From positions 16,107,807 to 16,171,806 of the forward strand of contig NC_134031.1 of NCBI RefSeq assembly GCF_964204645.1: a DNA stretch of 64,000 bases. Direction: 5' to 3'. Origin of the DNA: Tubulanus polymorphus. Taxonomy: Eukaryota > Animalia > Nemertea. Under the pieces are notes generated by a model that ran no database searches, was not told where the DNA came from, and was given only the letters and a program-made list of their open reading frames with translations. Positions 14,985 through 64,000 of the stretch are shown here, piece by piece. Each line of letters opens with the position of its first letter. The first letter of the stretch is position 1. The position numbers and the translations under genes are program-made.

Positions 14985-17900
14985 ATGGACTTCAACTCTT
15001 TACACATGATGACGAAACAGTTCCAGAATCAGGCGATGCAACAGATGCAGAATCAGATGATGGGCATGGGAGGCGGAATGCCGATGTTAAACCCGTTAGG
15101 CGCGATGATGGCTGCGGCAAACATGAGACGTATGTATCAATCGTTCGATCTAATCCGATCATGGTTTAGGTGTTTGATCATTGCCCAATTATCTATCATT
15201 AGTTATTAAGTCCTAAAACAGACAGATAGGCTATACGGGCAATTATGCCTTATAAAGTCTTAACCCATTTATGTCTTTATGTCTGCACCTGTCAAACAGG
15301 TCTAATTCTGGTTTTAAGTCATTTAAAGCACAATTCTTTGAAGCTAATAAATCAAACTGGTGTATCCAAAACTTCTACAGCAGACAGATTACTCCCATTT
15401 CACGTTTCCATTTCACCTTCATTCTACCTAATTTCATTAAATTTTGATCTTTTTTTCTGGGTGCTCGGATCCCTACGGGACACAGCCTCCATTGGCTTTC
15501 CAAGCATCCAGCCGTGTATGTATGTTAATTGTTTATAATCTATACATCATTTATACTGCATATGTACATGGCGAAATAAATATTATTATGTTATTAACAA
15601 GTGAAATCTTGGTAACTAACAATAAGTAATGAATAATAGTAACCACACTGCACTTTGATAAGATGCAATTAAAAGCGATATACGGATCATAAGGGTGGAA
15701 TTTTTCGAATGTTCATATTAACTCCAGCACTAGAGGGGTTTAGCAGAAGAAAAATCATAATCTGCCACGTTTCTTAATAAAAAACCTTTACATTTACTTG
15801 GGGAATATTGTCCTTGAAATGGGATGTATCTGGTTCAGAAATGAAAAAGTGGTCGCCCCAACCCTGAAAGAAAGGTATTTAACACATTCAATAACCCGAT
15901 GTATTTTGATTCAGATATGACTCAAGGAGGCCCGCGAGTTCCTAGAAGAAGTGACCGGCCGATGCGTCCGAGTCGTGGTGGACCGATTCGCAACAGCGAC
16001 CGTCGTTATAACAGCGGAGGACGTCATTTCTCGCCCCATCGCGAGGTAGGACAGTTTAAACCGTATATATCTTGTGGGCTAGCTGAGAATAACTTACCAT
16101 CATATAATCTCAGACATGACAATGACTATTCGTTCGAAGTTAACAACTGTTTTTAAGAGCAAAAAAATCAAAATACTCTATAAATCGCAATCAATTCTTC
16201 TATTTATGATGTCAAATTACTCAATTTTTGGTGAAAACTGCTACACTTAGGTATAGTTTGAGTCCGGTTTCATAGTCGAGACTTCAGTGCATAGTGGTTT
16301 TAAATCTTAAAGACTGGTCTTGAGTTGTTGGACCGACTTAGATGGTTGTAGACTGGTCTTAAGTTGTGTAAGCCATGACTATGGAACCAGTCCCCGGTCT
16401 GTAATCTAGGAATTTGGTCGATTGGCTATATTGAAAATAGCTCGGTAGCCTTAGCGGGTTTCGATGATTCGGGAAGGGGCAGTTGGTAAAAAAATGGCTG
16501 ATTAAATGGATTTCTGATCTAACCATACTTGTGTATTTCCCTATTGAAGCGCAGTGGCGGAATTAGGAGATCTCCGAATCGTCATAGCAGCGGTCGCGGC
16601 GGCCGACCGTCGCCGCGGCAACATTCGGACCGTAGTCGACCGACGTCGAGTCGCGGCGGACGAGACCATTACCGCAGCACGAGCGGTCGCAGCACGAAGA
16701 CGGGAACGTCGTCAAGTCATCATCACCACCACCGCAGCAGCAGCAGGAGCGGCAGTCGACACGGCTCGACGTCGACGAGTCACCGCGCGTCGTCTGGGCC
16801 GAGGAGGCACCACGACTCGGCGTCGCTGACGGACAAGCAACGCGACGACCTACGACGCAAACGTCAGGAAGAATGGAAGAAGAAGAGAGCGGTCGAGCTG
16901 AAGGCCGAGAAGAACCCGAACAGTTTGAAGGCGGCGGCGCACAAGGCGTTCGAGGAGTTGGAAACGACGGAACGATCGGCCGCGTCTGTTACGTCTCCGA
17001 TAGGTAAAACAACCGCTAGGTCACACTGCCAACAACGGCGGCCATTGATCAAATGTTTATTTTCAATAGGACCTTCGTCGACAGATGAGTGTCGTGTATT
17101 TACTGCTCATATAGGACGTTATATTCACCATCAGGTTCAGCAGTCGTTATTACGAGGACTCTTCTACTTCTACTACTCGAACAAACCACAAAAAAAAGAT
17201 TATCAAAATTATGTCTGTTTCTGCGTTTCTTTGCCAACGACGAGTGCCGACGATCGAGGCTACAGGACTTTGCGGAAACACGTAGCCGGCTGTTTTATTT
17301 ATCCGTGTTTTTAGCGCCAGCTCCGGCGGCGAGATCGCTGTACACACACACGTACGCACGCATGCATGCAACTGAAAATAAGGACTTGAAAAAAATCGTC
17401 AGCCTATTACTGCTCTAAATGCACTCAAATCGTACAGCGCTGCTTTGCTCGTAAAAAAAAAAAATCATCAGCGGGTTTATGCGTGGAGACAGTTGAGATG
17501 AGATTGCAACGTCTGAATTGATCGATTGATTCTGGAAGATGGTGGTGGTACTCTCGGGACTGTTCGTTGCGATAAATATTACCACCACGCAGTATAATCA
17601 GTTACCGTAGTCGAAGGCAACACCTTAGACGTAGTCTGCCCGTTGAAAACTAGAGACTAATTAGAAAAATTGTCAGATTCTTTAAATTTTAGACAGCTCT
17701 CCTAACTAACTAATCGTATATATTTTCGCAATTAGTTACGAACGACGAGTTTAGCCGAACCCTCGCTCGAACCTTAATTCGTGAACTTGTTGTTGATTTA
17801 CGCGTTTGTATTTATTGTAGAAGATGACGTGCCTAAGTGGCGAAGAATGGGAGTATTCAAAAGGGTACGTATGACCTGTAACTAGAGTTCGAATAAATGT

Positions 17901-20900
17901 TGTGTTTAAATTATGTTACGCCGTTATCTCCGAACGGTAGTACCTGCTGAATCGGGATCATTTCGCATGGAGAAATTGATTCTAGTTTATGAGAAATCCG
18001 GATTAGAAATTATATTTTGCGTATCTATGTCTACATGTATAGTTGGACTCAAAACCATATCTTGAAATCTGGATTAAACTGATTCGGATGAAAGGGGAAC
18101 TGCAGTGACGAAACTATAATTGGCCATTCATTAAGCTCTAGTCGATGTTTAACATAATGCTAGTTGAAATTTCCAGTTCTCCCTTATTAACTCATAAATA
18201 ACAATTTTAATACTGTTATCTGCAGAATTTACGGCAGATGAGATAAAGGTTTCAAATGCATATAAGATACAAAAAAAAGTTTTCACTGCAGTTCCCCTTT
18301 AAGCAGGTTTGACTGTAGTTCGAATATTTGAAAATGTTTGAAAACGGAATCTGATGAGTGATATTGTGTTGTCGATTGTTCCTGTTGAATAGATGTTATC
18401 GAATTTGTGATTTTTTTGCGGATTTTAATTTTCATTTATTCGTCCAAATTATGCACCATTGATATACTGGGAATAATTTGATGATGAAAAGCCATAGGGG
18501 GATTCTCATTAAAAATCACTAATCAGATCTGTTGTTGTTCTATTCGACAGAGAGACAGAGTGGTGAAACCGATAAGGCGTCCTTTGAAAAATTTCAAAGT
18601 TTTTCCCAAGGTAATTCTCGCAAACGACCGATCATTATTATTTTCGCTGAGAACGTGTCTCAGTATATCAGTGGTTTGAATACCTTCTTAAGCGCTTCAT
18701 TTTGTAAGGAAATATTGTTATGAAATTGTAATGAGAAAAAAATGAATATCATATGTGATTTATCCTATCTTCTTCAATGTCGATCGTGTTTACGTACGGC
18801 TATAATCCACGCACTTGAAGTTCGACCATTTTGCCACGCGATAATTCTCGTTAATATCTTGCGATCATTTCGTTTGTTTCTTCGTAGAAATTTATTCCGA
18901 AGGAAATCGTCGAGAAGCAGAAACAGAAGTTGTTGTCGACCCCGAATCTTTTGTCCGACAGGGTTACGACCAGATTGTTAGCCTCGGTCAAAACAAGGTA
19001 CAAACGTGTGTTTCATACTGCGGCTATTGCAGGGCGGGCACTGACTTAAATGCCTGGGAAACTCAGGGAATCAAAAATTTGGAAAACAAATCCGGGAAAA
19101 CAGGGATTTAACAAATTTTGCCAAAAAAACCTGGAAAACTCTGGATTTGGATTGTTGCTGACAATGCTTTTCTTTATCAATACGTGATTCGTAAAATATG
19201 TAATAAAATATGTATAAATTTTAATCCAAGAAATTCTTCACATTTACTCGGGGAATTTTGTGTTCTTACGTTGAGAAAATCTTGACAGAAAGTGGCCGCC
19301 CTGTATTGTGAAATGTTAAGAAGTTTTGCCCCGTATCAAATCTTGCTCTCATTTCTCAAATTCTCTTCATCCGTTTTTAGGACGATGAATTATTGTATCG
19401 TTTGTAAGAAGAATTTCTACGGAACGCGAGAAATTCATTCTCGATCAGAGGCCCATAAGGTAAGTGTTCATATCATAGAATAAGGTCTTCGTTGACCTTT
19501 GATTATTACGCAATATTTTTTAACGCCTCGTTGAGATTTTTATCGACGCAATGTTTTTCCCTCGTGTCTCTAGACTCAACTGAAAAATCGTATCAAGAAT
19601 CTGGGTTTGAATAAACGCTTGAAGACGCGACGGGAAATCGAAAAAGAGAAGAAAGCGAAGGAGGAGGCTGAGAAGGCAAAGGAAGCCAAGCAGCAGGAAG
19701 AAGAGGAAGAGGATGACGAGGATTTCATTTTCCCCGATAATTTGGACGACCTCGTCGTTATGGATGAAGTCGGCGAATCGGATGATGAAACTAAGAAAAA
19801 GGTATCGTATTCATTTATCATAACTTGTACAGGGTCTCGTTGATTCTGTAAAAACTGAAAATGATGCTTTTAAAGGTGCTTGAAATTCTTTAGATTTTAT
19901 CTAGCAAAATACCCAAAACTCAATTTGAGAAATAGGCAATTGGTCTTGTTTGTAGTGCTACAGTAAACTAAGCCAAAATCGGTACAGTAGGACCAGGATT
20001 CTTTCCAATTAGGTGGTTACCAAATTTAAACCTAGTTAAGGTAGTTTTTAAGGATACAAATTTCCTTATAAAACCACTGAATTAACTGTTTACCGAGATA
20101 ACAGCAGGGATCATTCATTTATTACGTACGCATAAAATTTGAAATTTTTAAATCGGCCATTCTTTCATATACATTAAGCATTACAGTACGCAATTGCACT
20201 GACCCCTCCCCCTCCCCTAATGCGTACGTAATAAAATGAATGACCCCTTACCGATTTCGGAGAAGTCTACAGTAATTAGGACATCAAAGTGATGCAGACG
20301 CTTCTTTGAAATTGTCTCCTTTAAAACTCCTTACATCCAGGAATGCACGATCTGTAAGGACCCTGTTATAGCTTAAATAAATGCTTAAAATAAGCAATTC
20401 TGAAAATCCTTACTTCAGGAATCTCCGAGCAAAAGTCGCCGCGACGATCGCCATCGCCACGACCGTCGTCACGACAACAGTAGCAGCAGCAGACGGCACC
20501 ACGACTCGCACCGTCGGGACTCGCATCGCAGCGGGGGTTATCACAGTTCGTCGCGACACGGCGACTCGTCTCGGTATCATCGGAGCAGAGACGATCGCAG
20601 TCGCCGCGGCGGTCATCATACGGATAAAAAAACCACAAATAAGGAATCGGAACACATGACGATGGAACAGGATCCGAACGGTGAGATCTTTTAAGTCGAT
20701 AGGTCAAGGACGTTATTACAATTCCAGGGGCTAGTGGAAACTGACCCGACTGTGAAGTTGGTTGATAAAAAGGACACATTTTCATCGGTAACAGGGTGGC
20801 CACTTACCTGAAAATCAGGGAAAAGATGGGAAAACTTCTTTCTTTAAAAAAAAAAATCAGGGAATTTTGTAAAACAGTTGAAAATCAGGGAAATTTGTTG

Positions 20901-22784
20901 AGATTGCTATTGGATTCTGAGCAGATAAAGTCAGGAAAAACAATATGCAAGTCGGGGAATCGTCAGGGGAAAAGTCAAATTAAAGTGGCCAGTCAGATTG
21001 TTTTGAAAACTCCCAACTGTGAATTTTGTTACTATCGATTACTTATTCATTATACAGGGTTTGAATATATTCTACCAGTGTCGGGATTCTTTTGTAAGTT
21101 GTGCACGAAGTTCTATCACACTGAAAGTGCCGCCAAGAAAAACCACGCGCGTTCGAAACCTCATCAAGAGAAACTACTGGTAAATCAGAATCAGCGAATC
21201 AAACATTTTGCAAATGTATTTGAATTTAGAGTGAGTAGTACGTTGTTTTAATTGTTTTATAGGCGGCTCGGGAAGAAATTGCCAAAGCCAAACTGGAAAA
21301 GGGCAAAAAAGAGAAAGAGGAACGCGAGAAAAGGGAACAAGAAGAAAAGCAGAAGAAAGAAGCAGAAGAAAAGAAAGAAGTCAAGCCCGAAGAGAATAAA
21401 GTATGGATTGGAAAAGTTTGACTCAACTGGATCTAGCTCCACGTCGATTCCTTACTGAAATGAGAAACGGTTGTTCGTTTGTTTTCAGGTTGACGGAGAA
21501 AAAGCCGATGACGAGAAAACCACTGAAGTGAAAGACGAAGAAATGACCGAATCGGAAGCCGTTGTCAAAGTCGAGGAGACGGCTACTACGGAAGAAAATG
21601 AGGACAGTTCGGCAACTGAAGCGAAAACAGAAATTAAAACAGATGAGTGTATGTATTCGATACAAATACTTCGATAAGTCAGGGTGGCCACTTATCTGGA
21701 TATCAGGGGAATTTTCTTAAAGAAAGTTAGGGAATAGTCAGGGAATTTTGTAAATAAGCTGAGAATCAGGAAAAGTAAGGGAAATTAGTTAAGACAGCTT
21801 AATCACAAGTAAAATCAAAGTTTCCGTATATGTCTTACATATTTGACTGCGTTAATTGATTGGATTCTTAGCAGATCAAAGCGGAATATGACGTGCATGT
21901 CGGGGAATAGTCAGGGAAAAAGCAAGTCAAATTTAAGTTGCCATCCTGTCAGCTATTCAGAAGAAGTAGATTGTTCTTCTTTTAATTCATACCATGTATG
22001 TGAGATTGCAGCAATCTCTATTCCAGCGGCAGCAGTGGAAACAGTCGAGAACGAATCGGAAGAAACCCCGGTCACATCTACAGCTGATGAGACGAAGATG
22101 GACGCGGAAATAAAAATTCGACCGGAGTTTAACGACGAAACCGATGAGAAGTGCGACGAAAACAGCGATAAAGAGGTCGAAGAGGAGATCATTGATGCTG
22201 ATGAGGATACAGAGGAACTGATTGTTCAGGTAAATGTAGGTTGATATCCAGCTAAACAAACCTGATTTAATAGTTTCGAATTAATTTTGATTGGGTACAT
22301 GAATTGGGTACTGGCTACTAATTCCACCTGAAAGTGCCAGGCTCGCTAGTGTAACGCTTCTTCAGGTCAATTAAGATTTAAGAAAAGAATTTCTCAAATT
22401 CTTTGGACAACGAATGAAAAGCCCGCAATATAATGAAAAACTAGAGATGAGAATTTGACAGCCTAATTCAGTGGGCCATTTCCTGAACTATGGAACCCAC
22501 AGAATTAGGCCGAAATGTCAAATTTTCATCTAAGTCTCATGAATTCTATGATTAATCAGAGTTTATCTAGTTAGCTAATTTTTGGATTTGAAAACTGAAA
22601 ATTATTGAAAATCAACTGATTTTGATCGAGCATGTCCGATATCTTTGCGTCGCGATCTGAACGGGATAGGGACGGTGTATCAGTGCCCTAATTTGTAAAC
22701 GTCGTCGTTTATTTCCAGGAATGTGAAGACGAATTGTTGGACGACGATTTGCTCGATATCGACGATACTCAAATCGAATCGTAA
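14985..22784 (+). CDS. Matrin/U1-type zinc-finger nuclear protein with RS/RH-rich and acidic regions (matrin-3/ZNF638/CIZ1/Pep-like), about 14 coding exons
   Basis: In-frame exon chain with YCIVCKKNFYGTREIHSRSEAHK (19381-19459), LDDLVVMDEVGE and GFEYILPVSGFFCKLCTKFYHTESAAKKNHARSKPH (21058-21179). Stop TAA at 22782-22784; probable non-coding first exon ends near 14096. Confidence 0.8.
18091..18302. mobile_element. Kolobok-like MITE
   Basis: AAAGGGGAACTGCAGTG ... CACTGCAGTTCCCCTTTAA inverted termini, with TTAA at the right end. Confidence 0.55.
19829..20366. mobile_element. Dispersed non-autonomous DNA element (CAGGGTC...GACCCTG termini) with a nested MITE
   Basis: Shares internal blocks (TTTGAGAAATAGGC, CCAGGAATG...GACCCTG) with copies at about 28500-28925, 39439-39888 and 48850-49193. 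Confidence 0.65.
20792..20991. mobile_element. CAGGGTGGCCAC-terminated, CAGGGAA-rich MITE
   Basis: Similar elements at about 19030-19302 and 21680-21950 share the terminal motif and internal CAGGGAA repeats. Confidence 0.55.
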
Positions 22785-31305: not shown

Positions 31306-31781
31306 TTTCTGAGATCATATGATTTTATAATGATAACATAAACATTGCGCAATGCACAGGAAGTTCACCACACGACCTTGACTCTTATTTCGGTGACACC
31401 TATCCACATTTTGACATTTACTTCCTGATTGTGGAAATACTGCATATGAGTTAAACTGCAGCGTCCCGTGAGAGGACCCGGGCCTGTGACGGGACATGGG
31501 TCCTCTCACGGGACAAATGTAGAATTCTTACATGAAACGTCGATTCCAATGCTAGCGGTTTCGAGTCCCAATATTCTTATGTATTCTGCCTATAACGATT
31601 ATGAATAAATAAATTCAACTATCGATTGTAATTATTACATTTTCCATTTTGATTTCATTTATAAATACATAAAGGCCTACCGAAAAATTCTAATTTACTG
31701 CAGGGCCAGGGGGACAATAGGGGATGTGAATGCACGTTTTTCACGCAGGATTTTACAACGGAACCCGCGATTCAAGTTACC

Positions 31782-32778
31782 GTCCCGTGAGAGGTCCCGA
31801 TTCAAGACAATGTCCCGTGAGAGGACCCGATTTTAAATACTGTCCCGTGAGAGGACCCGGTTCAACACACTGTCCCGTGAGAGGACCCGATTTTAAATAC
31901 TGTCCCGTGAGAGGACCCGGTTCAACACACTGTCCCGTGAGAGGACCCGATTTTAAATACTGTCCCGTGAGAGGACCCGGTTCAACACACTGTCCCGTGA
32001 GAGGACCCGATTTTAAATACTGTCCCGTGAGAGGACCCGATTCAACACATTGTCCCGTGAGAGGACCCGGTTCAACACACTGTCCCGTGAGAGCACCCGA
32101 TTTTAAATACTGTCCCGTGAGAGGACCCGATTCAACACACTGTCCCGTGAGAGGACCCGATTTTAAATACTGTCCCGTGAGAGGACCCGGTTCAACACAC
32201 TGTCCCGTGAGAGGACCCGATTCAACACACTGTCCCGTGAGAGGACCCGATTTTAAATACTGTCCCGTGAGAGGACCCGGTTCAACACACTGTCCCGTGA
32301 GAGGACCCGATTTTAAATACTGTCCTGTGAGAGGACCCGATTCAACACACTGTCCCGTGAGAGGACCCGATTCAACACACTGTCCCGTGAGAGGACCCGA
32401 TTCAACACACTGTCCCGTGAGAGGACCCGATTTTAAATACTGTCCCGTGAGAGGACCCGATTCTAAATACTGTCCCGTGAGAGGACCCGATTTTAAATAC
32501 TGTCCCGTGAGAGGACCCGGTTCAACACACTGTCCCGTGAGAGGACCCGATTTTAAATACTGTCCCGTGAGAGGACCCGATTTTAAATACTGTCCCGTGA
32601 GAGGACCCGAATCAACACACTGTCCCGTGAGAGGACCCGATTTTAAATACTGTCCCGTGAGAGGACCCGATTCAACACACTGTCCCGTGAGAGGACCCGA
32701 TTCAACACACTGTCCCGTGAGAGGACCCGATTCAACACATTGTCCCGTGAGAGGACCCGATTTTAAATACTGTCCCGT
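31782..32778 (+). repeat. 30-bp tandem array (about 33 units): TGTCCCGTGAGAGGACCCGR + TTTTAAATAC or TTCAACACAC
   Basis: Directly visible 30-nt periodicity. Confidence 0.97.
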
Positions 32779-33310
32779 CTATCCGGAATTGGGAAACATT
32801 GCGGAAGAGTAAAAGGGGAAATATGAAAGAATTGATGATAACCTTTTTTACCGTGTAAAGTAATAATTGATAATTAAATGATAAGAAATAATTTAGTTTG
32901 GCGACAAAGATTAAGTAACCTAAAATGCTAAATTGATTTCGAATTCCAACGTATGTTGTTTATGTTCAAATATGAATAATATAGTCTTCGAATGTAATAT
33001 GGTTTACAGATTTTGATAAATAAATAACTGAACATAATTTCACATATATACGATTTGTTTTATGTTTTAAGGGGACATAGCCAATTTGGCTTTTAGTACG
33101 TACATCCAGCCATCATTGTACGCATATTGTTGAAATAATAATTTCTTGTTGTAATTTTTATACATGGCAAAAATACATTATCATTATGAACATGGGACTC
33201 AACATTGACAAAGTGGACAATTTCATTAGGTCTACCAATCGTAGATCAGTGGATCCAGCCAACGGACGGCGAAGGACTCAAGTAACTAAATCGGGGCCGG
33301 GTAGAAACCT

Positions 33311-34610
33311 GTCCTCTCACGGGACAGTATTTAAAATCGGGTCTTCTCACGAGACAGTATTTAAAATCGGGTCTTCTCACGGGACAGTATTTAAAATCGG
33401 GTCCTCTCACGGGACAGTGTGTTGAACCGGGTCCTCTCACGGGAGAGTGTGTTGAATCGGGTCCTCTCACGGGACAGTGTGTTGAATCGGGCCCTCTCAC
33501 GGGACAGTGTGTTGAACCGGGTCCTCTCACGGGACAGTATTTAAAATCGGGTTCCTTCGCGGGACAGTATTTAAAATAGGGTCCTCTCACGGGAGAGTGT
33601 GTTGAACCGTCTCCTCTCACGGGACAGTGTGTTGAACCGGGTCCTCTCACGTGACAGCAAGTTGATTCGGGTCCTCTCACGAGACATTATTTGAAACCGG
33701 GTCCTCTCACGGGACATTATTCAAAATCGGGTCTTTTCACGGGACAGTAAGTTGAATCGGTTCCTCCCACGGGACAGTGTGTTGAACCGGGTCCTCTCAC
33801 GGGACGGCAAGTTGATTCGGGTCCTCTCACGAGACATTATTTGAAACCGGTCCCTCTCACAGGACAGTATTGAAAATCGGGTCCTCTCACGGGACAGTGT
33901 GTTGAATCGGGCCCTCTCACGGGACATTATTTGAAACCAGGCCCTCTCACGGGACAGCAAGTTGAATCGGGTCCTCTCACAGGACAGTATTTAAAATCGG
34001 GTCCTCTGACGGGACAGTGTGTTGAATCGGGCCCTCTCACGAGACATTATTTGAAACCGGGCCTTCTCACGGGACAGTATTCAAAATCGGGTCCTCTCAC
34101 GGGACAGTATTCAAAATCGGGTCCTCTCACGGCACAGTATTTAAAATCGGGTCCTCTCACGGGACAGTATGTGAAATCGGGTCCTCTCACGGGACAGCGT
34201 GTTGAATCGGGTCCTCTCACGGGACAGTATTTAAAATCGGATCCTCTCACGGGACAGTGTGTTGAACCGGGTCCTCTCACGGGACAGTGTGTTGAACCGG
34301 GTCCTCTCACGGGACAGTATTTAAAATCGGGTTCCTACTCGGGACAGTATTCAAAATAGGGTCCTCTCACGGGAGAGTGTGTTGAACCGGGTCCTCTCAC
34401 GGGACAGTGTGTTGATTCGGGTCCTCTCACGGGACAGTGTGTTGAACCAGGTCCTCTCACGGGACAGTGTGTTGAATCGGGCCCTCTCACGGGACAGTGT
34501 GTTGAACCGGGTCCTCTCACGGGACAGTATTTGAAATCGGGTCCTCTCACGGGACAGTAAGTTGAATCGGGTCTTCTCACGGGACAGTGTGTTGAATCGG
34601 GTCCTCTCAC
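33311..34610 (-). repeat. 30-bp tandem array (about 43 units), reverse complement of the left array and more diverged
   Basis: GGTCCTCTCACGGGACAGT(ATTTAAAATC/GTGTTGAATC) units. Confidence 0.97.
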
Positions 34611-50816: not shown

Positions 50817-52334
50817 TGCATGTATGACCATTTACCCACCGCTGCAAAATTTATGCGGTGATTGTGTGAAACCTTTCTTTTGATGTTCAGATTGACCGTG
50901 GAAGTTATTTGAGAATGTTTTATGCCATTTTAGTCTGCTGCATGACGTACCACGCTGTTTATTGAAATAAACTTGTTAAACTGATGTCGTATCTTCGATA
51001 TTCTCTTCTTGGTAGTAACACTCACAGCTTCTCAATGATCAGTAGTCATTTAAACTGAAAGAATTTTCATTAAAAAATGGATACAGTCAAAGCCCGTTGT
51101 AACGCCATGATCAGGACCAAGAAGAATATGGCATAATAATAATAATAATGAATTTGTCGCAGAATCATGTGTTCATGGAATGGATTTGAGTCGGATTTGG
51201 CGTATGTTCTTGGAATGTTAATGTTAGGCCTAGTGAGCTTGGTCATTATAATTGACTTGGACTGTACATAAACCCTGAAACATGTTTCCTTTGCCTTTTA
51301 ATATAGTGGTAGCCATTGACCCAATTCTAAAATTTTCAAAAGCAGGATGGCCCCTTTCATTTGACTTGCCTTTTCTCTGACTATACCCTAACATGCACGT
51401 TGCTTTCCTGGACTTGATCTGCTAAGAATCCACACTATTAACACAGTCAAACACGCAAGACATAGATGGAAACTGTTTGATTTTACGCATGATTAAGCAA
51501 TCTCGACATAGATCCCTGACTGTTAGCTTTTTTACAAAATACCCGTCCCTGACCTTTTTAAAGAAAAGACATGTCCACAACAATTTGAGAATTCCTGTAC
51601 CATTCTCGACCATGAAAGTAAAATGACAAAATACCTCATGTTAGAAAGTATAATTTTAGTTTTATTGCTTTATGTAAAACTTAAGCTGATACATTTTACT
51701 CCATGGACGAAATATGTTTATGATTATGGCACAACGTACAAAAAAATTACTTTACAAAATTCTTGACTGCCGAAAAGCAACAGAACTATCCAACCGATAA
51801 ACCCTTACATGGCAGGTGTTCTAACAACCAGACAAAAATTTGGTTCTTAATTTCGTAATCTCAGTAAAATAATGTGTAAAATGAATGATATTTCCGTGTG
51901 AATAACAGGATTCTACAATAGCTACTAAAATAATCATATTACTACATCGAATTACATATACAATGTAATAGAGTTCTAGACAATATCTTTTTTTGTACTA
52001 ACGAAGCATGCGTATAATATATACAGTATATATATATATATATGTGATGTACATATAAGGTAAACTAGTGATTTACTAAATATATTGTATAAATTGATCT
52101 GTATATTATGATTGTATGAAACCCTGTTTCTTAATAGTGTCAAACACATTAAGCCATAGTGAAAAAAATGCATCCATTACTTACAATGAAACCACAGAAT
52201 CTTAGAATCAAAAGCCTTATTCAATTTAAGTTACATGGTAATATATACTTTTGGTGTTGCGGTTAATAATTGTGGCCAAATATATCGATCGATTCGAATC
52301 TTTTTCGAAAAAACCAAAATCATTCGCGCTGGAA

Positions 52335-52834
52335 TTAGACGTCGCACAATCGACCGGCTCCCTGATCCGACGTGCAATCATCGGGCATACCCTGCGACGA
52401 AGACCTCTTCGACAAATCCAACACTCGTTGCCGCAACAACTGAACGGCGTCCATCATGAAACTCTGTTCTTGTTGCTCGAACGGTAGCGTCAAATCGAGC
52501 ACGTCGCTTTCTTTCTTCCCCTCTTCAACTGTTTGAGAATTACTCGTCACGTAGTTATTATTCGACGAGTCGTCCGTCTGGAATTGCGGCGGCCATCGTT
52601 TCAGTTTCTTCTCTTTCATGCGTCGATTCTGGAACCAGACTTTGATCTGTCGTTCGGACAGACCGAGCTCGGCGGCGATCTCCGTGCGACGGTGCTTCGA
52701 GATGTAGTGATTGGCGAAGTACTCGCGTTCTAAGCCGACACGTTGTTGACACGAGTAAACCATACGATAGCACCGGCCGCCGTCGCGATACTTAAACGCT
52801 CGCAGACGGATGTCTCCTCCGCCGCTGCCGCCTT
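52335..52834 (-). CDS. Terminal exon encoding a Cdx/Caudal-like (ANTP-class) homeodomain; putative variable exon C of the TF locus
   Basis: Acceptor TTACAG|AA (phase 1). YRMVYSCQQRVGLEREYFANHYISKHRRTEIAAELGLSERQIKVWFQNRRMKEKK. AATAAA on the minus strand near 51661-51666. Confidence 0.85.
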
Positions 52835-53465
52835 CTGTAAACAAAGATTTTAAAAACATTTTAACTTCTCGAAACGGCGCGAAAAACTATCATGAATGCA
52901 GAAAACAATTTCAAACGATTTGTATGAGTACCGTAGTATAATAATATTGGATATATTTTTTTATGAGATTTCAGTTCTGACAAGATGAAAGCGATTTGTA
53001 ATCAAAATTGAAATCGACAACAGAAAGCTTGATTCGTAGTAGGCAAAATTTCATGCAAAATCACTAGCAAACGCATGCCATTAGTGTCTCACGTCATGCA
53101 ACTTACATCATGCAACTGCAATCATTTCAGCAAATAATTTATAATCAAGTTACCCTGATTTACTTGTATCCTTCAGATGGATCTGCTTTTACCATTACAA
53201 CCTTTAGAAAAAGCCCAGACTTTAGACTATTTCCCTATTAACTCTTGCGCATAAAATTGGTTTTGTTTGTATAATGATTTATTACAGAGACTGTCTGGTA
53301 ATAATACTTAAAGATCAATAAACATTTGAGGTTATGAAGTGAAAATAACTTCTATCAAATGGTAAATTGCTAACTGGATTCTGCAATAATCAGTACATCA
53401 TGGTTAATACATGGTTCAAGAGACAAATCTATAAAACATGATAGGGTTATTATGTCATTTCAACA

Positions 53466-53932
53466 TCATTGTATTCCAGATGATATGAACCCAAGCGGGG
53501 TGTACGTGACAACTTGATTGACACTAGGGGGCACTGAAGTCTGCGTCTGCGATTCTAGATTAACGTTCGCGTTCATCCACTGTAACAAATCAGAATTCAC
53601 AGTCGGTAAAGTCGATGCATTTGAATCCCCCGCTGTAACCGAATTCGTAGATGGGTCCACCAGGGTTTGACTAGAATTGAACGAAGCTAGCGAACTTAAC
53701 ATGTAGTTTCTGTAACACCGTGTTTTCATGTGCTGTTGCAGGTTGTCCTTCCTCGTAAATGCTTTGTGGCATATGCTGCACTTGTGCGGTTTAATTCCGA
53801 GATGCGCCATACGGTGGCGCTGTAAATGATGCGACAAAACGAACGCCCGGTTGCACATTTCGCAGACGTATTTGCGTTCAGCTGAACACCCTGGTCTCCT
53901 TCCCTGCCATGAGGAGGACGTGGCGAACCTTC
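53466..53932 (-). CDS. Terminal exon with a C2H2 + C2HC zinc-finger pair; putative variable exon B
   Basis: Acceptor TTACAG|GA (phase 1). CEMCNRAFVLSHHLQRHRMAH-LGIKPH-KCSICHKAFTRKDNLQQHMKTRC. Own stop codon and AATAAA on the minus strand near 53278-53283. Confidence 0.85.
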
Positions 53933-54520
53933 CTGTAACAATTAGAAAGAAAAGAAGTGTGATGCAGCAAATGACCGAATATGTCATCGTGACGACTACA
54001 AAATTACGACTAAGTAATTCGTCGCAGGATCAAATAGTGAATATTCCGAAATTAATGCAAATTCAAACTGATTACTTACATTCTGTCGAAAAAGGGAAAA
54101 AGAAATCATAAGAAAGGGCAAAACTGAATGGAAAAGGTCGGATAGAAAGAAGGCATAAAATAATGACAACAAAAATACAGTTAACAACAAAGGACAAAGA
54201 AGACAAAGGAAGGTAATAATAAAATGATTCTACGCAAACTCGGTATCGGATTCATCGAGTACCCAGATTAACAGGCTTGAAAAAAACTAAATCAATTCAA
54301 TGTACAATATGTAAAATATTTGAGAATTTATTTTGCATAAGAAGTGACAATAAAATAATTAGTTACATTATGCAGCGATATAAAAATGACCACAGATATT
54401 ATCTCCACATTGTTCAATTTACATGTGCATCAACGTATATACGAACAGTAGTAAAAATTCACTAGTTTCAACTATGTACAGAGTTTAATGTATATAAAGT
54501 TTCGTAGGTATCTTTTACAC

Positions 54521-54526
<6 letters not shown>

Positions 54527-54570
<44 letters not shown>
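54527..54570. repeat. (TAA)n microsatellite
   Basis: About 14 TAA units. Confidence 0.95.
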
Positions 54571-57198
54571 GGTATAAACGACGCGTAGGAAAACGCCAAA
54601 AACTTCTCATCATGTGTAAAAGCCAGCAACCACCCTTTAGAGAGAGAGATAGAGAGAGACTATCATAGTAATATATTGGTAATGTTTTTAATATCACAAT
54701 TTTTCCGAGCCAATTTTTGTTGCAGATGAACTCATTCACAACGCGTAACTTTACTTATTATACTGCTCAAAACATGGAAGGTGGCACCTCGAATTACAAC
54801 AGGATCGTTCAATATCGAATTAAGTATCTAACACTAGAAAAAGCGGTATTTTCAAAATCATAATTTTGAACATATAAATTTCTATTCCTGCGTTGATCAA
54901 AGCTGCCATCTTTACTCTCAAGGTTCTTAATTTGAGCATTTTCATTTGGGCCAGCCATGAATCCTAATTTCTCGATGTTACTTTCATGATTTTGTAATAA
55001 AGAACTGAATTCACTTGCCTACAAACTACGGGGCAATATCGAGTATAAAGTATTGTCAATATTATGATCGAGGAAGGCATCAATTCGGAATATTGAAATC
55101 GTGGTCATGTAAAAAAGAATCAAAGACAAGAATTTAACCAGTTTAAAAAAAAAAAAACAATTCTGTTGACTAAACCTACTGCTACCTAAACAAAACACTA
55201 TCGTTCAATAATATAGAAATTTCATAAAAAGATTTTTAACAAGATATATTCATATGCCGAGAATACGTGGAATGTATGAAGACGGAATATCTTAACGATA
55301 TAATAGTACGTAAAATTGATAGAAAAAGATTATGCATTTTTACACGTTGTATATATGTGTGAGTGTGCGCGGAAGGCAAATTTATGCGCATCCATTAGAA
55401 AATAATTTGCATAGCCTAGAGTGCGTTTCAACGAAACTAGTCACAAATCGACTCTGATATTTTCACCAGCAGAATAAATGGAAAAACTAAAATACGACCG
55501 AGGGTTTAAGTCTAGGAGGAAATAAAGGCTATGCAAAGTTTCAGATCATATACAGTACATTTGAAAAGAGTTGAGATTTTTTTGGAATGTTAATAGTATT
55601 AACGAATTCAGATCTATCTTCAAGAGATATATAAATATCTATGTATAATATATCGTATAATATAAGACTCAATTGAGAGAAGAGTTTGTAAAAAAAAACA
55701 ATAATTCTGAAAATAATAGTTGTATACCAAAGCTGTAGGTTAGAATCTTGCTCCGAGTCACATGATCGTAAATTAACTAATTACGACTCCATAGTCCTGT
55801 CTAATTGACGACTACGGGAGTCCAGAAGACTAAAATTGTCCGTGCCGTCGTTGAGATTCTTTGCGGTCTAATAGAGAGATGAACAAAAAATTTCCGAGAA
55901 GACCTGGTTCGGTTAATAGCAGCACAATTATTATGGTTTCATTCGCATAACCTGTAAAATGACTCTGACAGCCAGAGTGGTTATGTATTTATATATACAA
56001 AGTTTAATTCCATCAAAACAAACGTTATTGATATTCAACGGTACTCACGCACGCGCGCGCGCATCTGAACGTTGGAATGTTTTATATCATTATGCCGTTA
56101 ATATATAAAAAAAATAACTGCCGCGGCTGCGCGGGGCAGCGCATAATGCTTCGCCACGATCAATATGTTCATGATATATCATTCAATATTATTCAAACAT
56201 TAAGATGAAAATTCTAACGAGTATATAAATATATATGTATATAAAAAACGTGTCGAGTCGAGATTCGTAGAAATAAGAAAAACATTTCGTACTATACGAA
56301 AGTGTGGAGATTCGAATAATGATAGAAATTATGCTATGTTTTAAGTACGAGTTTACACGTATTCACTAAAAAAAGCACATTTTTTGCTCGCGCCAGGCCA
56401 GGCGACGCGAAAAAAACATACCTCTCACCGTCATGATGATTATGATGATGATGATAATAATATATTTTACTTTTCATATACATATATTTCTTGGATAATA
56501 AAATAACGACCATCCTTGCATAGTTAGAATTATCGTAACCAGTAGTTCTTGGCACCAAGTTTTAGGTACGGAGTTAAACGCACCCCTATCAACATTTTCG
56601 AAATAAACTACGCCCGATCATGTTTTCACCTACTAAAAAACCGCACAGTCTAATGGGGACGTGCAATGCCAGGTTTCCCCACCAGATGGCGCGACAAATA
56701 CTCGGCCTTTCGTCGTAAAAATCAAACCGAATTTTTAGGCTTCCGAATCCACACGTTATCATATGACCCAACAAATATACTTTAAATTCATTTTTCTACT
56801 TAGATACCGGTGTAGTTTCCATAGTATTTGATCTAATTAAGAGAGAAGTTCATTCAAGTTTTCATTGAAACGTAGAAGATATTGAACGGGAAAGACCGAG
56901 TAACTACTAGCGACACCTGGCGGGTCCTCGCTTGCCACAGGAGCGTTGGTAGTTCCCCATTATCGAGCGTCATCCCGTTGATTTGTCGTTCAAACTGAGA
57001 ATACGATCGATATATTGAACATGATTTTTTCGATTAAAACAAAAATTCACTAAAAACCACTCGATTATAATATCGCTCGCTAAACGAATAACTATCAACG
57101 CGAAAATAAAAGAAAGAGAGGTATAGACAGCGAAAATACGCAACGCAAACTACACGACTTCAAAAATGAAGCGCGCGAGTCGAAAGTCGATCGTCGAT

Positions 57199-57788
57199 TT
57201 AAGTAACTGGCGCCGTGGTCGGTTCTTCTTTCAGCAACTTCTGTCGACACGTCTTCTTATGTCGCGACAAGTTACTCTGCCAGCGGAAGATCTTCAGGCA
57301 ATTCTCGCACTGCAGCTGCTGGAACATGTGCATGCCCTTGATGTGCTGTCGCAGGTATCGACTCTCCGTGAATATGTCGCCGCAGATCTGGCAGATGAAC
57401 GACGTGCCCGACATGCTCGCGTTCTGCAGCTTGCCGGCGCATGTGCGCACGTGCTCGCGGTACTCGGCGTACATGAATCGGCGTCGACAGCCGCTGCACG
57501 TGTACGGCCGGATTCGCCGATGCGATTCCATGTGCTCCATGTACGTTTTCTGACTCGAAAAGCTGACGACGCAAATCGGACATTTGTAACAAACGCCGCC
57601 CTTCGCGATGCTCCCCGACGCGGCGACGCCCGACGACGACGTCGGCGACAGCTTGTTCTCGTTGTTGGCACAGTTCGACAACACGGCAACGGACTCTGTC
57701 GTCGCGCCGATTCCCGTCGCGCCCGAACGATGCTGCAGCAGTTGCTTAACGTGATTCATTCTCAGATCGAGGCTCTCCGGTTCCGGGC
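57199..57788 (-). CDS. Terminal exon with four zinc fingers (C2H2, C2HC, C2H2, C2HC); putative variable exon A
   Basis: Acceptor TTTTTAG|GC (phase 1), in frame with ORF 57199-57759: CPIC..HMESH-RRIRPY-CSGC..HVRTC...CQIC..HIKGMH..CENC..HKKTC. Confidence 0.87.
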
Positions 57789-58159
57789 CTAAAAATACAG
57801 CAATTTTTGAATGAAAAAAAAAAAATGAAAAGAAATTCTCGCAAAAACCGTTGACCTCAACTCGATCAATCGGAATAACTAAACAGAATTCAGAAAAGAA
57901 GAAAGATTTTTTTGTTAGAAAAATGAAGCAGTATGAAAAGTGAAGTGATATTTCGGTTGTTTTTGAAATGGCAATCGAAAGCGAATTCCAGTTGGCCTGA
58001 GCAGAACAGTGCGAGCCTCTCTCCGATAGTAGTCCACGAAAAAAAAAGAGCGTTAAAAAGTCTCGGCTAGTTACGTTAGATATGTGCGTTACTAAATATA
58101 CACGTCTTAAAAAAAGAATGTCAGAGTGACAAGCTCAAGAGACACCCTCATCCTACATC

Positions 58160-58868
58160 CTAGCAGGCCAGGTGATGATAGACAGTGAGTGCACCAGCAG
58201 GCCGGGTGATGATAGACAGTGATTGCACCAGCAGGCTTGGAGATGATAGACAGTGACTGCACCAGCAGGCTGGGCGATGATAGACAGTGACTGCACCAGC
58301 AGGCTGGGAGATGATAGACAGTGACTGCACCAGCAGGCTGGGCGATGATAGACAGTGACTGCACCAGCAGGCCAGGTGATGATAGACAGTGACTGCTCCA
58401 GCAGGCTGGGAGATGATAGACAGTGACTACACCAGCAGGCTGGTAGATGATAGACAGTGACTGCACCAGATGGCTGGGTGATGATAGACAGTGACTACAC
58501 CAACAGGCTGGTTGATGATAGACAGTAACTGCACCAGCAGGCTGGGTGGTGATAGACAGTGACCGCACCAGCAGGCTGGGTGATGATAGACAGTGACTGC
58601 ACCAGCAGGCTGGGTGGTGATAGACAGTGACCGCACCAGCAGGCTGGGTGATGATAGACAGTGACTACACCAGCAGGCTGGGTGATGATAGACAGTGACT
58701 ACACCAGCAGGCTGGTAGATGATAGACAGTGACTGCACCAGCAGGCTGGGTGATGATAGACAGTGACTACACCAACAGGCCGGGTGATGATGGACAGTGG
58801 CTACACCAGCAGGCTGGGTGATGATAGACAGTTACTGCACCAGCAGGCCGGGTGATGATAGACAGTGT
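58160..58868. repeat. 34-bp minisatellite (about 21 copies)
   Basis: GATGATAGACAGTGACTGCACCAGCAGGCTGGGT units. Confidence 0.95.
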
Positions 58869-60264
58869 AGCCCTATTAGAGATAAGCAAAGAAAATGAAT
58901 TGAGAGCGAAGCAAACCCTACTACCAAATGTGAATGACGAAGTAAAGTATAAGTAAAGCGTCCAACAAAAAATAAAATCCTGTGCGACCTGCTGAGTCAT
59001 AGCAACGTGTACTAGAAGTTAGATCTGCGGTAAGTAGGCAGCCGGCCAAGTGAACTATCGCAGATAAGACAACAACCTTTCTAAACCGTCGAAATCTTCA
59101 CCACTTGATGAAGAAATATCTCCGTTGATTACGAAATCTAAGTCCAGATTGCGTTATCAGTTAATAAATCTAAGCATCTAAACATGCATTCTGATCTAAG
59201 AGTTATATTGTTAGTAATCAATCGCCCTTTTGATTTTAGTTAAATTAATCTTCATTAGCGGTTTTGAGCACCATGCAAAATATAAGCCCAGTGTTCATAT
59301 ACATTTTGACTGCAATATTCTTAGATTAGCATAATATTTTGTTCATGCAAATTTTATTCTAGCATTATTACTGATTAGTAGCAATGTCTTAGTCGAAACA
59401 TAGAGACAAATCTCGCGTCTATCTCTTGAATATTTACGTTCGATTCCGACATCGATTTTTAATTGATTCGGCGAAATTAATACATCGGATTCTTCTAGAT
59501 TAGACGATATGAGTACAACGAAGACGATGACAAAATACACGTACACACAGCGTTGTGATCACAGAGATACAGAGGAGGAAAGAGAAAGGAGGAATGAGTA
59601 AGGAGGCAGAATGAAAAGGAAAGAAACCAGGTGCCACAGCGAGCGGTTGTTAGTTTAGAACGAAATCGTGAAAACGGAACAGAAATCGAGGCACAATTTT
59701 CAGTCGAATTTGAAATTACTTTTCACATCGATTTCTAGAAATTTCTACGAACGTCTAATTCGAATAAATAAATGAAATCTACTAGAGGCAAACATGCATC
59801 GATTGATTGTTTCATCAGCGCGGCAACGAATTACAATTTTTAACGCGGTGCGTATAGAAGCTATGACTGAAGCTGTACAACAAGTTTTGAACTCATGCAA
59901 GGTGGCGCCACTTTCCGCCTGTTTACAAATTTGGTTTTCCCGGATTTTTCCATGTGGTTACACGAAATTCAGCGAGTGAACCAAGAGAAATATCTAGATT
60001 GCAAAATGCTACGATTCTTAGATTTTTCATTGAATCACGTACATGTGTACTGATAAAGAAACCTGTGGTCGATAACACTATCCAAGTGTTTTTGGTTTTA
60101 GGTTTTTGGTCAAATTTATCAAATTCTCTTGAGTTTTCCCGGATTTTTTCCAGGTTTTCCAGGTCAGTATTCACCAATACGTCGTATACCTCAATCATAG
60201 CTTCCGTTCTTTTTCATCAATCACGATAAAATCATAATAATCTAAGAAACCGAGCATCACTCAC

Positions 60265-63030
60265 CTGCACGTTCCATCGCGACCGTCTGCTCGTCGGCGC
60301 CGTCCTCGTCGATGAACAAATCGGATTCGTTCTCGAGTTCGTGCGAGATCTCGAGCGTCGTCGAGCCGCCGTCGAACGAAGGTTCCTCTTTCACTTTAAT
60401 CGTGTCCGGCGTCGCGCGGCGACAGTTCATTTCGACGACGCCGCCCTCTTTTTTCACGATCGGCGTCGACTGCGCGTTCGGTATCGGCGCCGCGTCTTGA
60501 TGGTTGAGGTTGATGTCGCGCGCCACGCCGCTGCCGTGGTTCCACCGTTCGACGCTCGGCGAAAGCAACGATTTGTTGCGTACTTTTTTCTGGTGTCCGC
60601 CGATGGAAGTGTTCGACTGACGGAACTGTTCGCGGATCAGATCTAACGGATTGCCGCCACCGGTGGCGCCACCACCGACGAGGCTGTTATCGCAGTTTTG
60701 AAACGCAGCCATCTGGTAAACGGCTGTGTTGTTAATTTGTTCGGAAGCTTCTGCTAAACTATCGATATTATCATTATTATTATTATTACTACAACTGTTA
60801 TTGGAAGTGGGCGACATTCTACTGGACGCGGCGGTCGACTGCAGCAGCCCGGCGGCCGCCGTTATATTCGTCGGCTGCGGCTGAATCGTTGCCATGGAGA
60901 CAAGTGGATTTCGTGGAAGGAACGGATTGACGGGGATGGCGGTCGATATGTTTTTGGCGCAGTCGGACATACTATGGCTAGACGACATACTCTCGCTGGA
61001 AACGGAATGTCTTTGGCGTTTTAACGGCATCGAAGGAGCGTTGACGACGCCGCCGCTGCTGCTGTTGTTGTATTCGGATTTTTGGAACGACAGATTTTCA
61101 TCGTGCCCGCGGAAACGTTTCTTGTTGGCGTTGTCGCTGCGATACTCGAGTACGTATTCATCGTCCTCGTCGGAGACAACCTGGTCGACTGATATACGCA
61201 ACGGCTGACTTCTTTTACCTGAAGCACAATGTATAGGCATTGAAAAATCAAAAAAATCTCACCTCTTATTTGACTTTTTTTACACCTTTCCCTGACATTC
61301 TTTTAAATAAAAAAAAATTCCATGACTTCCCTGAATTTCAGGTTAATGGCCACCAACCTGTTTCAGTGTACTAGAAAGGTAGGTTTTACATATATCAGCA
61401 CTTTCACTACTACGCGCAGTTGAAATTGTGAATTTTTGAGTTTATTTTGTAATCAAAAATACATTTCATAACCCTTATCCTATTTTTGATAAATTTCAAT
61501 AACTATTTTTGAGAGGATGTGCACTAATATATCGGGGGCTACACTGGTTGCCTGTAGATTCAATTAAACTGATATCAAAATCCAAAGTATCTGTGAAGAT
61601 GCTTATTACTATTGATCCTTATATTATATAATTTATATTACATCATTCATTGCCAATAGTATTACGCAATATACCAGTATGTGTTATTTTTCAAGGCGTC
61701 AATAAACTTTCAAGTTTCTTGCTCGTACTTTCATTGTTAATTAACATAAGCGCTTTACAGATTGAAATAGAATTTCTAAGAGACTTCAACGCAGCTGGTG
61801 CATAAATTCTGATCGAAATATTTCTAGAGTAGACACTTTTCTCAAATTTTCCACAGATTTTCATTGAATACAGTATTTCACAGATTTTTCATTCAAATTA
61901 TGTTCACATCAATCTTTCCCCTGATTTGATTAATTCTTCAAGACGTAGAATATTCATTCATTTGAGGTCTATTCCTCTGATGACTTACGTCTGTTTTTCG
62001 CCGCACGCTTTGATTGCCATTTTAACCAGGTCGGTTCATCTACTTCTAAAACTAGATCTTCTATCACATCAATTTGGTCCCGTAAGCAATTTTTCAAGTC
62101 GTCCATGTGAACATGGAAAGGAATGTCTGAAAAATAAAAATACCGATATAGCCTAAATAGTTAAAACCCCTAAATCAGTCTGTTAACCCTTTCAGTGCGT
62201 CTACACTGCAGTGCAGTGTAATGATCGGTGATGTATTTTTGCTGGTACACCGCACTACGGTGTATTGATGTAATGAGTAATTAGTTTTTATCTCTACTGA
62301 AAGATGGCAGCACCTGTCAAACATAGTGAAATACTAGTAACTAATGATACACCGCGCCGCCGTGTAGACGCATTGTAGTGGTATACCCGTTATTCAAACG
62401 AATAGGGTGGAATTTTTTAAAATTTTCAAATTATCTCCAGCACTATCGGCTATTGGTAAGTCAGCACTGAAAGGGTTAATCTATCCGTGAATTTGCCCTG
62501 ACAATCATACAATCGAATTGGTATTGCATATGAGTCGGATTGGTACCGAAAAACCTGCGCAGTGAGGCAGGATTTTGTGCCGCGGCCGAGTCTTGCGATG
62601 CCATGGTTCGAATTCCTGCCAAGGGAGGAGGGGAAAGTGGCCACCCTGATCTACACTGCAGTGCGGTGTATTAATTGGTGATTGACTTCGGTGATACAAT
62701 ATTGATTCAATATCAGTTATCGCTATCAAAAGATGGCAGCACCTGTCAAACATTGCGAAATACAAGTACCTTAGTAACTAACACAGCACCACAGTGAATA
62801 TGCTCAATATCGGTATTCCCATTATACAAGGCACTAAGGGGTAAGAATTAGTTAGCACTGAAATGGTAAAGTGACCCCTCAAATTCATTTCCAAGAACCT
62901 AACCGTCTGGATTTCTTCAAATATATTGCCGCCAGGATTCAATCCATGAACCCTAAAGGATGACACATTAGGGAACCACTCAAAACCTTACACACGCTAC
63001 AGGTTTTTTCTGCTTACCTAATAAAATCAT
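60265..63030 (-). CDS. Constant N-terminal region of the modular transcription factor (3 coding exons)
   Basis: ATG at 63030 (MILL, donor near 63018), exon about 61989-62126 (DIPFHVHMDDLKNCLRDQIDVIEDLVLEVDEPTWLKWQSKRAAKNR), and exon 60265-61218 (low complexity, NLS-like KKRFR/LKRQR, SUMO-like VKKE/VKEE). Ends GCA G|GTGAGT (phase 1). Confidence 0.8.
62183..62479. mobile_element. piggyBac-like MITE (TTAA|CCCTTTCAGTGC TIR)
   Basis: TTAACCCTTTCAGTGC ... GCACTGAAAGGGTTAA; related copies at about 36470-36750 and 62650-62870. Confidence 0.8.
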
Positions 63031-64000
63031 CTTAAAAATGTCTTTGTTCTTTAAATTGTAGAGTTTTCTTTATATCATTTCAGTTCACCAGATCCGTTTC
63101 CTGAAATGAAATTAAAAAACATTGATTTGAAATACCTAGAATTATAATTATGATTAATTGAATTCATGACACATGTTTGATGACTAGCCTCTAAAATGAG
63201 GTGTTGAAGCATATTTAAGTCAAAGCCGCATTCGCACTACATTACTTACTAACTTGAAGGATGATCCTTCTTTATTTAGTAAGTTAGTACAAACCCCAAT
63301 TTAATAGAATCAGAGAATGATTGGACCAAGGCCGTGTTCACATACATTCTGAACTGGACGTTTTAGTAATGAGAAGGGCTAACTTCATGGGAAGGATGGA
63401 ACCAGGGTTTGTACATTAGGAAAGAGGTAACCAAGGCTAGAAATTCATGGAAAAAGGTTGGTCACGTTATTTTACAGCAAAAAACTGAACATTTTATCAC
63501 AGACTATTACTAAACTCTCGGGGTTTATTAGGCCAATTTTACTCAGTGATTTCCTAACCCTAAACCTAACCCTAATCCTAACCACTAGTCCCCTATTCTT
63601 GAATCTTACCAAAAGGTATTCTTACAGTTAATTTTCCGCTCAGATAAAATTCAGTTCGGATCCCTATAGTTATTTGTTCTTATTTCGACTGAAGCGACCT
63701 CTGGTGACACTCGCTTACCGGGGTAAGTAGGCAAGCGGACACCGGAAGTGTATCATGTCGAAACTGTCGCAGGATTACTCGCTTCCCTCGGTATCCTTTC
63801 AATTCAATTCAATTTAAAAATGTACGCGCTATCTAAATCTGTGCATTCAAAACGATTAGAAACGAAATCAATTTGTTGGATTTCGATAATTGAAATTTGA
63901 AAAAAAGATGCTACGTTTCGGACTCTCTTAGAGACCCTTATCGTCTCGAGTTGCTCGGCGTGCGTAGAGATGAGTCCTCCCGCCAATACTGTTAAGCCGA

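Follow-up and report, generated by a model that had tools for sequence, protein, structure and literature searches.

Can a single gene address unrelated sets of target sites through the choice of its last exon, exchanging one DNA-binding fold for another? This question is raised by a locus of the nemertean Tubulanus polymorphus on the minus strand of the 64,000-nucleotide (nt) stretch C7:16107807-16171806 (C7 being contig NC_134031.1), which is called the window below and is numbered from its first letter. A protein search with the large constant open reading frame (ORF) of the locus identified it as the NCBI gene LOC141908832. The Drosophila genes lola, mod(mdg4), fruitless and broad encode BTB transcription factors whose 5' exons are shared and whose 3' exons are used alternatively, and lola and mod(mdg4) use trans-splicing. 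To our knowledge, only a few such insect BTB genes are known in detail to exchange the DNA-reading part through the last exon, and there a zinc module is always replaced by a zinc module. In LOC141908832, one common donor (last exon base 60265) is joined to two different zinc-finger endings, as contigs of a public sequencing run show, while a third ending, a homeodomain, is predicted to use the same donor. We consider it quite probable that the locus is a single gene with a shared head, joined from 60265 to a four-finger, a two-finger or a (predicted) Cdx-derived homeodomain ending. Of the joints behind the swap between unrelated DNA-binding folds that a first-pass annotation of the window proposed, the two to the finger exons are observed and the one to the homeodomain exon is predicted; the exchange of fingers for a homeodomain is probable. 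New here are the RNA evidence for two joints, an exact model of the gene, the grouping of the homeodomain with Cdx together with its phase-1 match to the true Cdx, and a structure model of the head domain.

Finger swapping from one common donor

NCBI predicts three isoforms of LOC141908832, X1 (564 amino acids, aa), X2 (534 aa) and X3 (523 aa). Residues 1-368 are common to all and only the tails differ, one per terminal exon. The 368-aa head is composed of a 4-codon start exon, an exon for an N-terminal domain of about 46 aa and an exon for a 318-aa linker. Exons were searched one at a time, and the full-length isoforms used are the database models. The elements of the gene are the following (a slash marks the exon boundary):

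63018..63030, minus strand: exon 1, first coding exon, 13 nt; ATG at 63030, four codons (MILL) plus one base; donor GTAAGC, phase 1
61989..62126, minus strand: exon 2, conserved N-terminal domain; acceptor ttttcag, donor C/GTAAGT, phase 1 on both sides
60265..61218, minus strand: exon 3, low-complexity Ser/Asn/acidic linker, 318 aa; acceptor gcttcag/GTAAAAG, donor GCAG/GTGAGT
58162-58867, no strand assigned: 34-bp minisatellite, 20.8 copies, 90% match, in the intron that leads from the common donor to exon 4a
57199..57788, minus strand: exon 4a, coding part, four fingers; acceptor tttttag/GCCCGG; stop 57199-57201
53466..53932, minus strand: exon 4b, coding part, two C2H2 fingers; acceptor ttacag/GAAGGT; stop 53466-53468; AATAAA at 53283
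52335..52834, minus strand: exon 4c, coding part, homeodomain; acceptor tttacag/AAGGCG; stop 52335-52337; joint to 60265 predicted (NCBI isoform X2)

All introns are in phase 1: each of the three constant donors leaves one base of a split codon, so that any terminal exon fits the frame. Exon 1 agrees with the first residues of the NCBI isoforms, and the 5' untranslated region (UTR) continues upstream; position 63030, where the first-pass annotation had ended the locus, is the ATG of this 13-nt exon. The phase-1 donor it had placed at the end of the constant exon was confirmed by direct reading of splice site and frame: the donor at 60265, common to all terminal exons, is in phase 1 because it lies 976 nt from the ORF start at 61240. 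Read on the plus strand, the end of the constant exon begins CTGCACGTTCC... At 57788, 53932 and 52834, the acceptor is a pyrimidine tract ending in AG, and exactly one base of the preceding exon keeps the DNA-binding ORF in frame. Coordinates and phases of the three same-strand terminal exons, each with its own stop, had been given correctly at first pass, and they match NCBI isoforms X1-X3. Exon 4a has a Pfam match to zf-C2H2 (7.7e-13) and carries, by motif, two canonical C2H2 and two C2HC-type fingers, whereas exon 4b (zf-C2H2, 2.2e-11) carries two fingers. Beyond exons 4a, 4b and 4c, the minus strand of the window has no further finger or homeodomain ORF. The minisatellite at 58162-58867 translates as long repetitive minus-strand ORFs.

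Evidence for the joints comes from public T. polymorphus sequencing runs, five in total, four of which (X2, X3, X4 and X5; not to be confused with the isoforms) were mapped to window positions 52000-57999, a segment spanning all three acceptors. For run X2 the evidence consists of assembled contigs, and holes in contig cover prove nothing. One contig of this run spans 57066-57790 and continues with 27 letters identical to 60267-60293, a sequence present once in the window. A loose end at 53935 continues with 26 letters identical to 60268-60293, likewise present once in the window (plus strand). Both extensions match the end of exon 3 and, with the 2-3 ambiguous letters allowed, give the exact joints 60265 to 57788 and 60265 to 53932. 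Run X2 has zero depth at 57800-57999 and therefore represents spliced material. Because the constant exon 3 occurs only once in the genome (search of the 268-Mb T. polymorphus assembly with residues 1-368), a processed retrocopy is excluded. The gene thus swaps its fingers from one common donor, and an origin of these two joints at a donor other than 60265 is contradicted. Among the junctions from 60265 that the first-pass annotation had named for checking, those to 57788 and 53932 were found in the contigs of run X2 and the one to 52834 was not seen.

These joints also bear on the idea that the isoform set is an annotation artefact uniting three unrelated neighbouring genes. Beyond the general error rate of automated models nothing speaks for it, and two joints from one donor already contradict it for the finger exons; the terminal exons moreover lack start exons of their own and the same design recurs in paralogs (see below). 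We give this idea almost no credence.

Downstream of the stops, the polyadenylation signals differ. Candidate AATAAA signals had been noted behind the stop codons, which agrees with the sequence in part: one lies 183 nt past the 53466 stop of exon 4b and one about 670 nt past the homeodomain stop, but after the 57199 stop of exon 4a the first AATAAA is 2.9 kb away (an ATTAAA is 1.2 kb away). Run X2 covers 53906-57790 nearly without gaps, including almost all of the 3.3 kb between the exon 4a stop and the exon 4b acceptor. This cover and the distant AATAAA point to an exon 4a transcript that probably carries a long 3' UTR (>3 kb) overlapping the exon 4b acceptor. In the mechanism we propose, donor 60265 would be spliced to a single one of the three terminal exons, which have their own stops and poly(A) signals behind them. 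Which exon is used would depend on how splicing to a more distal acceptor competes with the formation of a 3' end at a proximal exon.

The homeodomain exon and its probable Cdx origin

Does exon 4c belong to the same gene? It encodes a Gly/Ser-rich lead-in, a whole homeodomain and a 90-aa tail. The homeodomain is complete (PF00046 at 52605-52772, 1.6e-20, 73.1 bits against a cut-off of 22.9) and retains R5, L16, Y25, L40, W48, F49, Q50, N51 and R53, the usual DNA-contact and core residues. We regard the joint of 60265 to 52834 as fairly likely, based on NCBI isoform X2, the splice geometry and a paralogous locus on C8. As to geometry, the 52834 acceptor sits exactly where the AT-rich sequence changes to GC-rich, its phase equals that of the donor, and the exon follows 632 nt behind the exon 4b stop on the same strand.

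The paralogous locus provides the main indirect support for the homeodomain isoform:

C8:10774631-10797149, minus strand: paralog array; head-domain exon (phase-1 donor), linker (phase-1 acceptor), nine twin-finger exons, homeodomain last

Similar to LOC141908832, this locus has a head exon, a linker, a row of phase-1 twin-finger exons and a homeodomain exon at the end, which is the most distal exon in both loci. Each of its nine separate twin-finger terminal exons has a phase-1 acceptor. For its linker exon the constant donor could not be pinned, as no strong phase-1 GT was found. The last exon encodes a homeodomain (Pfam, 1.1e-21) behind a phase-1 acceptor, with no in-frame Met before the homeodomain, and therefore cannot be a stand-alone gene. 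The two loci differ in the number of finger exons (nine on C8, two here) and in the homeodomain, which on C8 is far more divergent, does not group with Cdx and has no possible start codon. Across the genome, these are the only two of the 45 head-domain loci with a same-strand homeodomain within about 25 kb downstream, compared to an estimated 0.3 such pairs expected by chance.

Several points weigh against this assignment. No contig or loose end of run X2 joins 60265 to 52834 within 52000-57999, and the run has zero depth over 52000-53800, homeodomain exon included; this hole also takes in the body of exon 4b, though the same run shows the exon 4b joint. The 2015 run X5 contained nothing for 52000-57999, and none of the database matches to the homeodomain exon is an RNA-derived fragment showing the joint. 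Runs X3 and X4 extend over this exon, yet both consist of DNA fragments. We rejected their use as RNA: their fragments end at GATC and a constant 12-letter tag (GATGGACGAACC or its complement), with contig ends at the GATC sites at 52364, 53313, 55614, 56161 and 57187, and one contig runs unspliced across 57788. These unlabelled runs look like restriction/proximity-ligation-type DNA libraries, and nothing about expression follows from their cover of the homeodomain exon. Furthermore, NCBI isoform X2 may have been predicted and lack read support. At 52859, 25 nt before the acceptor, there is an in-frame ATG from which a stand-alone homeodomain protein of 174 aa could start. Finally, in a tree of 60 homeodomain columns, the C7 and C8 exons are not clearly sisters, the C8 exon standing on a very long, unplaced branch.

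Taken further, the ATG at 52859 suggests a different reading, in which the gene swaps its two finger endings only and the homeodomain ORF is a separate single-exon gene, a divergent Cdx paralog with its own promoter, isoform X2 being an artefact. The whole homeodomain indeed lies within one ORF, the ATG has an A at -3, and the lack of a joint and of depth in run X2, an RNA-like run, points the same way. This ATG lies, however, in an AT-rich and pyrimidine-rich stretch that ends in a canonical acceptor just where the composition turns GC-rich. The agreement of acceptor and donor phase, the position close behind exon 4b, the C8 exon with the same layout and no Met of its own, and the excess of homeodomain/head-domain pairings over chance also argue against a separate gene, which we hold to be unlikely. 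Still less likely is a reading in which exon 4c is spliced, as a last exon, to an unannotated first exon that lies within the locus and has a promoter of its own, giving a protein that lacks the shared head. Hox-like genes do usually have a separate first exon, and the upstream partner of the 52834 acceptor was not observed in run X2. Yet in the 450 nt between the exon 4b poly(A) signal and 52834, no ORF combines a start codon with a phase-1 donor. Along the minus strand from 57199 to 52834 exon 4b is the only other coding ORF, and NCBI models no first exon there, in agreement with the first-pass annotation, which found no separate upstream start exon for any of the terminal exons.

Turning to the source of the exon, whose joint to 60265 we continue to favour, its best database matches are CDX-4 (57-59% identity), followed by posterior Hox proteins. 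Within the genome it shares 45-55% identity with the Hox cluster (C6:5.32-5.63 Mb) and with C5:5.608 Mb, a homeodomain that reads as the true Cdx of T. polymorphus. The 60-column tree places exon 4c as sister to T. polymorphus Cdx and vertebrate CDX4 with support 89/92. Exon 4c has the Cdx-type N-terminal arm (Y-R-x-V-Y ... Q-R) and the L-G-L-S-E-R-Q motif and, like the true Cdx, runs as one exon from a phase-1 acceptor through homeodomain, tail and stop; in the true Cdx, this acceptor lies eight codons before the homeodomain. By contrast, exon 4c is only about 50% identical to the Cdx of this worm and has no Cdx N-terminal region, but a predicted family head instead. A search for the Caudal_act domain (PF04731) gave no match anywhere in the genome, the true Cdx included, and is hence uninformative.

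Most simply, exon 4c would have arisen when the last exon of Cdx was duplicated into the array, aided by the phase-1 acceptor of Cdx itself, since an exon in this phase drops into a phase-1 array with no change of frame. An alternative assignment of exon 4c as the Cdx orthologue was rejected, as it lies on another chromosome (C7 versus C5) and is devoid of the Cdx front half. The homeodomain of the true Cdx (C5:5608620) has a Hox-like homeodomain 20 kb away, at C5:5588362, and exon 4c lies outside this ParaHox neighbourhood. The two homeodomains at C5:5.588-5.608 Mb form a ParaHox-like pair. On C6, eleven collinear same-strand Hox-type homeodomains within 320 kb (5.318-5.634 Mb) make up an intact-looking Hox cluster.

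The head domain family and lola-type designs

The constant part is not domain-less, as it begins with a conserved three-helix domain of about 46 aa, encoded by exon 2. Its motif reads hydrophobic-V-x-E-x-L-x-x-C-L ... L-D ... V-D/A-D-x-x-T-W-x-x-W ... R, and in an alignment of 29 head domains D34, W38, W41 and R45 are near-invariant; LOC141908832 conforms to this family motif. An AlphaFold model computed from the alignment is confident and shows three helices (predicted local distance difference test, pLDDT, 86.4). The genome search with residues 1-368 found many relatives of exon 2 and none of exon 3, the linker, which would be disordered judging by its composition. A genome profile search with the first ~60 residues located 45 head-domain exons on ten chromosome-scale contigs, with clusters of about 15 at C8:11.41-11.64 Mb and three at C7:17.71 Mb; one exon lies 4 kb past the end of the window on the opposite strand. 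With about 45 such exons in the genome, LOC141908832 is one member of a lineage-specific switchboard family and not a lone invention. Among 1.84 billion representative proteins, nine (the query included) were found at E <= 0.001, most of them ending in C2H2 fingers and several with multiple isoforms. All named relatives in this set are from T. polymorphus, next to one unnamed 78-aa fragment with no recorded source. A word-based protein search with residues 1-60 returned the gene's own isoforms only.

The array design recurs within the family. In the head-to-head neighbour LOC141908711, nine or more twin-finger terminal exons lie behind the head-domain exon, every one of them with a phase-1 acceptor, so that both other head-domain loci examined (LOC141908711 and the C8 locus) carry lola-like arrays. 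Phase-1 introns and rows of phase-1 terminal DNA-binding exons are present at all three loci, a recurrence which, together with the two joints in run X2, goes beyond chance. Another relative on C8, LOC141909522, carries the same head domain and no fingers, and its residues 767-820 have a sub-threshold Myb-like match (E = 0.083); this tail may hint at further DNA-binding classes in the family.

None of the 29 head domains matches a Pfam family, and a profile search against PDB gave nothing below E = 0.1. The structure model fared alike: Foldseek found no match in PDB, a wide structure search (VIA) gave Z scores of at most 4.3, for unrelated helical entries, and the ESM Atlas returned short unspecific helical matches by shape and nothing by features. 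As no fold search was significant, no known fold can be assigned to the head domain. Since it sits where BTB, ZAD, SCAN and KRAB sit in other families, it may recruit partners or self-associate, as BTB does in lola; a homodimer prediction gave no verdict and speaks neither for nor against this.

How closely does the design follow that of the insect genes? As in the lola-type system, LOC141908832 combines an N-terminal module and a linker with one donor serving several terminal exons, each with its own stop and 3' end. These exons encode small DNA-binding units, mostly finger pairs, and paralogous loci reach arrays of at least nine. The differences concern both ends of the protein. The head is a three-helix domain instead of BTB and has expanded to about 45 exons, while exon 4c encodes a homeodomain and not a zinc-binding module, exons 4a and 4b encoding zf-C2H2 fingers. 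Pfam returned nothing on exon 3 or on residues 1-368, BTB included, and the nearest BTB match (PF00651) on C7 is 360 kb away, which bears out the earlier description of the constant part as BTB-less. LOC141908832 is therefore not a member of the lola/mod(mdg4) family. For the independent evolution claimed at first pass, the lola-like design and a head domain confined, among the proteins searched, to this species fit an independent origin. The family also resembles the KRAB-ZNF (tetrapods), ZAD-ZNF (insects) and SCAN-ZNF families, in which genes that combine a short N-terminal domain for effector or association functions with a linker and C-terminal C2H2 fingers have multiplied in clusters within a single lineage. 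Those families, however, have long finger arrays, whereas in T. polymorphus most of the diversity arises from the use of alternative terminal exons by one gene. In sequence, the head domain does not match KRAB, ZAD or SCAN, and its fold shows no clear match to them either. We found no description in the literature of the head-domain family, nor of a terminal-exon swap between fingers and a homeodomain.

We lean towards the view that a nemertean-specific family of about 45 head exons has reinvented lola-style switching and that at least two of its loci have recruited homeobox exons, one of them from Cdx, giving finger or homeodomain factors from one promoter with one partner-binding head. That the lola logic appears in a phylum far from the insects and under another head domain suggests that the design evolved convergently, and the contigs of run X2 add read-level support for splicing in this T. 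polymorphus family. Exon 4c would be a concrete example of phase-1 exon shuffling in which the homeobox of a developmental gene, Cdx, entered a regulatory switchboard. Should the homeodomain joint prove true, one promoter and one cofactor-binding head could address two unrelated sets of target sites.

Other features of the window

At 56935, runs X2, X3 and X4, which all derive from sample S2, leave the reference at the same base and with the same 30 letters, probably because the two sequenced individuals differ there by an insertion or another kind of structural variant. The plus strand at 16529-22244 holds exons of another gene, with an Arg/Ser-rich ORF and two ORFs carrying single matrin/U1-like C2H2 motifs; Pfam gives a single weak hint for it, a match to a CIZ1-like finger (E = 0.002) that falls below the family cut-off. 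A large minisatellite block at 31730-34359 contains long ORFs with PVRGPDS/FKYC-type repeats on both strands and is probably non-coding repeat. At 63553-63616, an element of about 60 nt beside a short telomere-like CCTAACCCTAAA repeat has more than 40 copies on many chromosomes at 93-100% identity (one at 88%), and is a short dispersed repeat.

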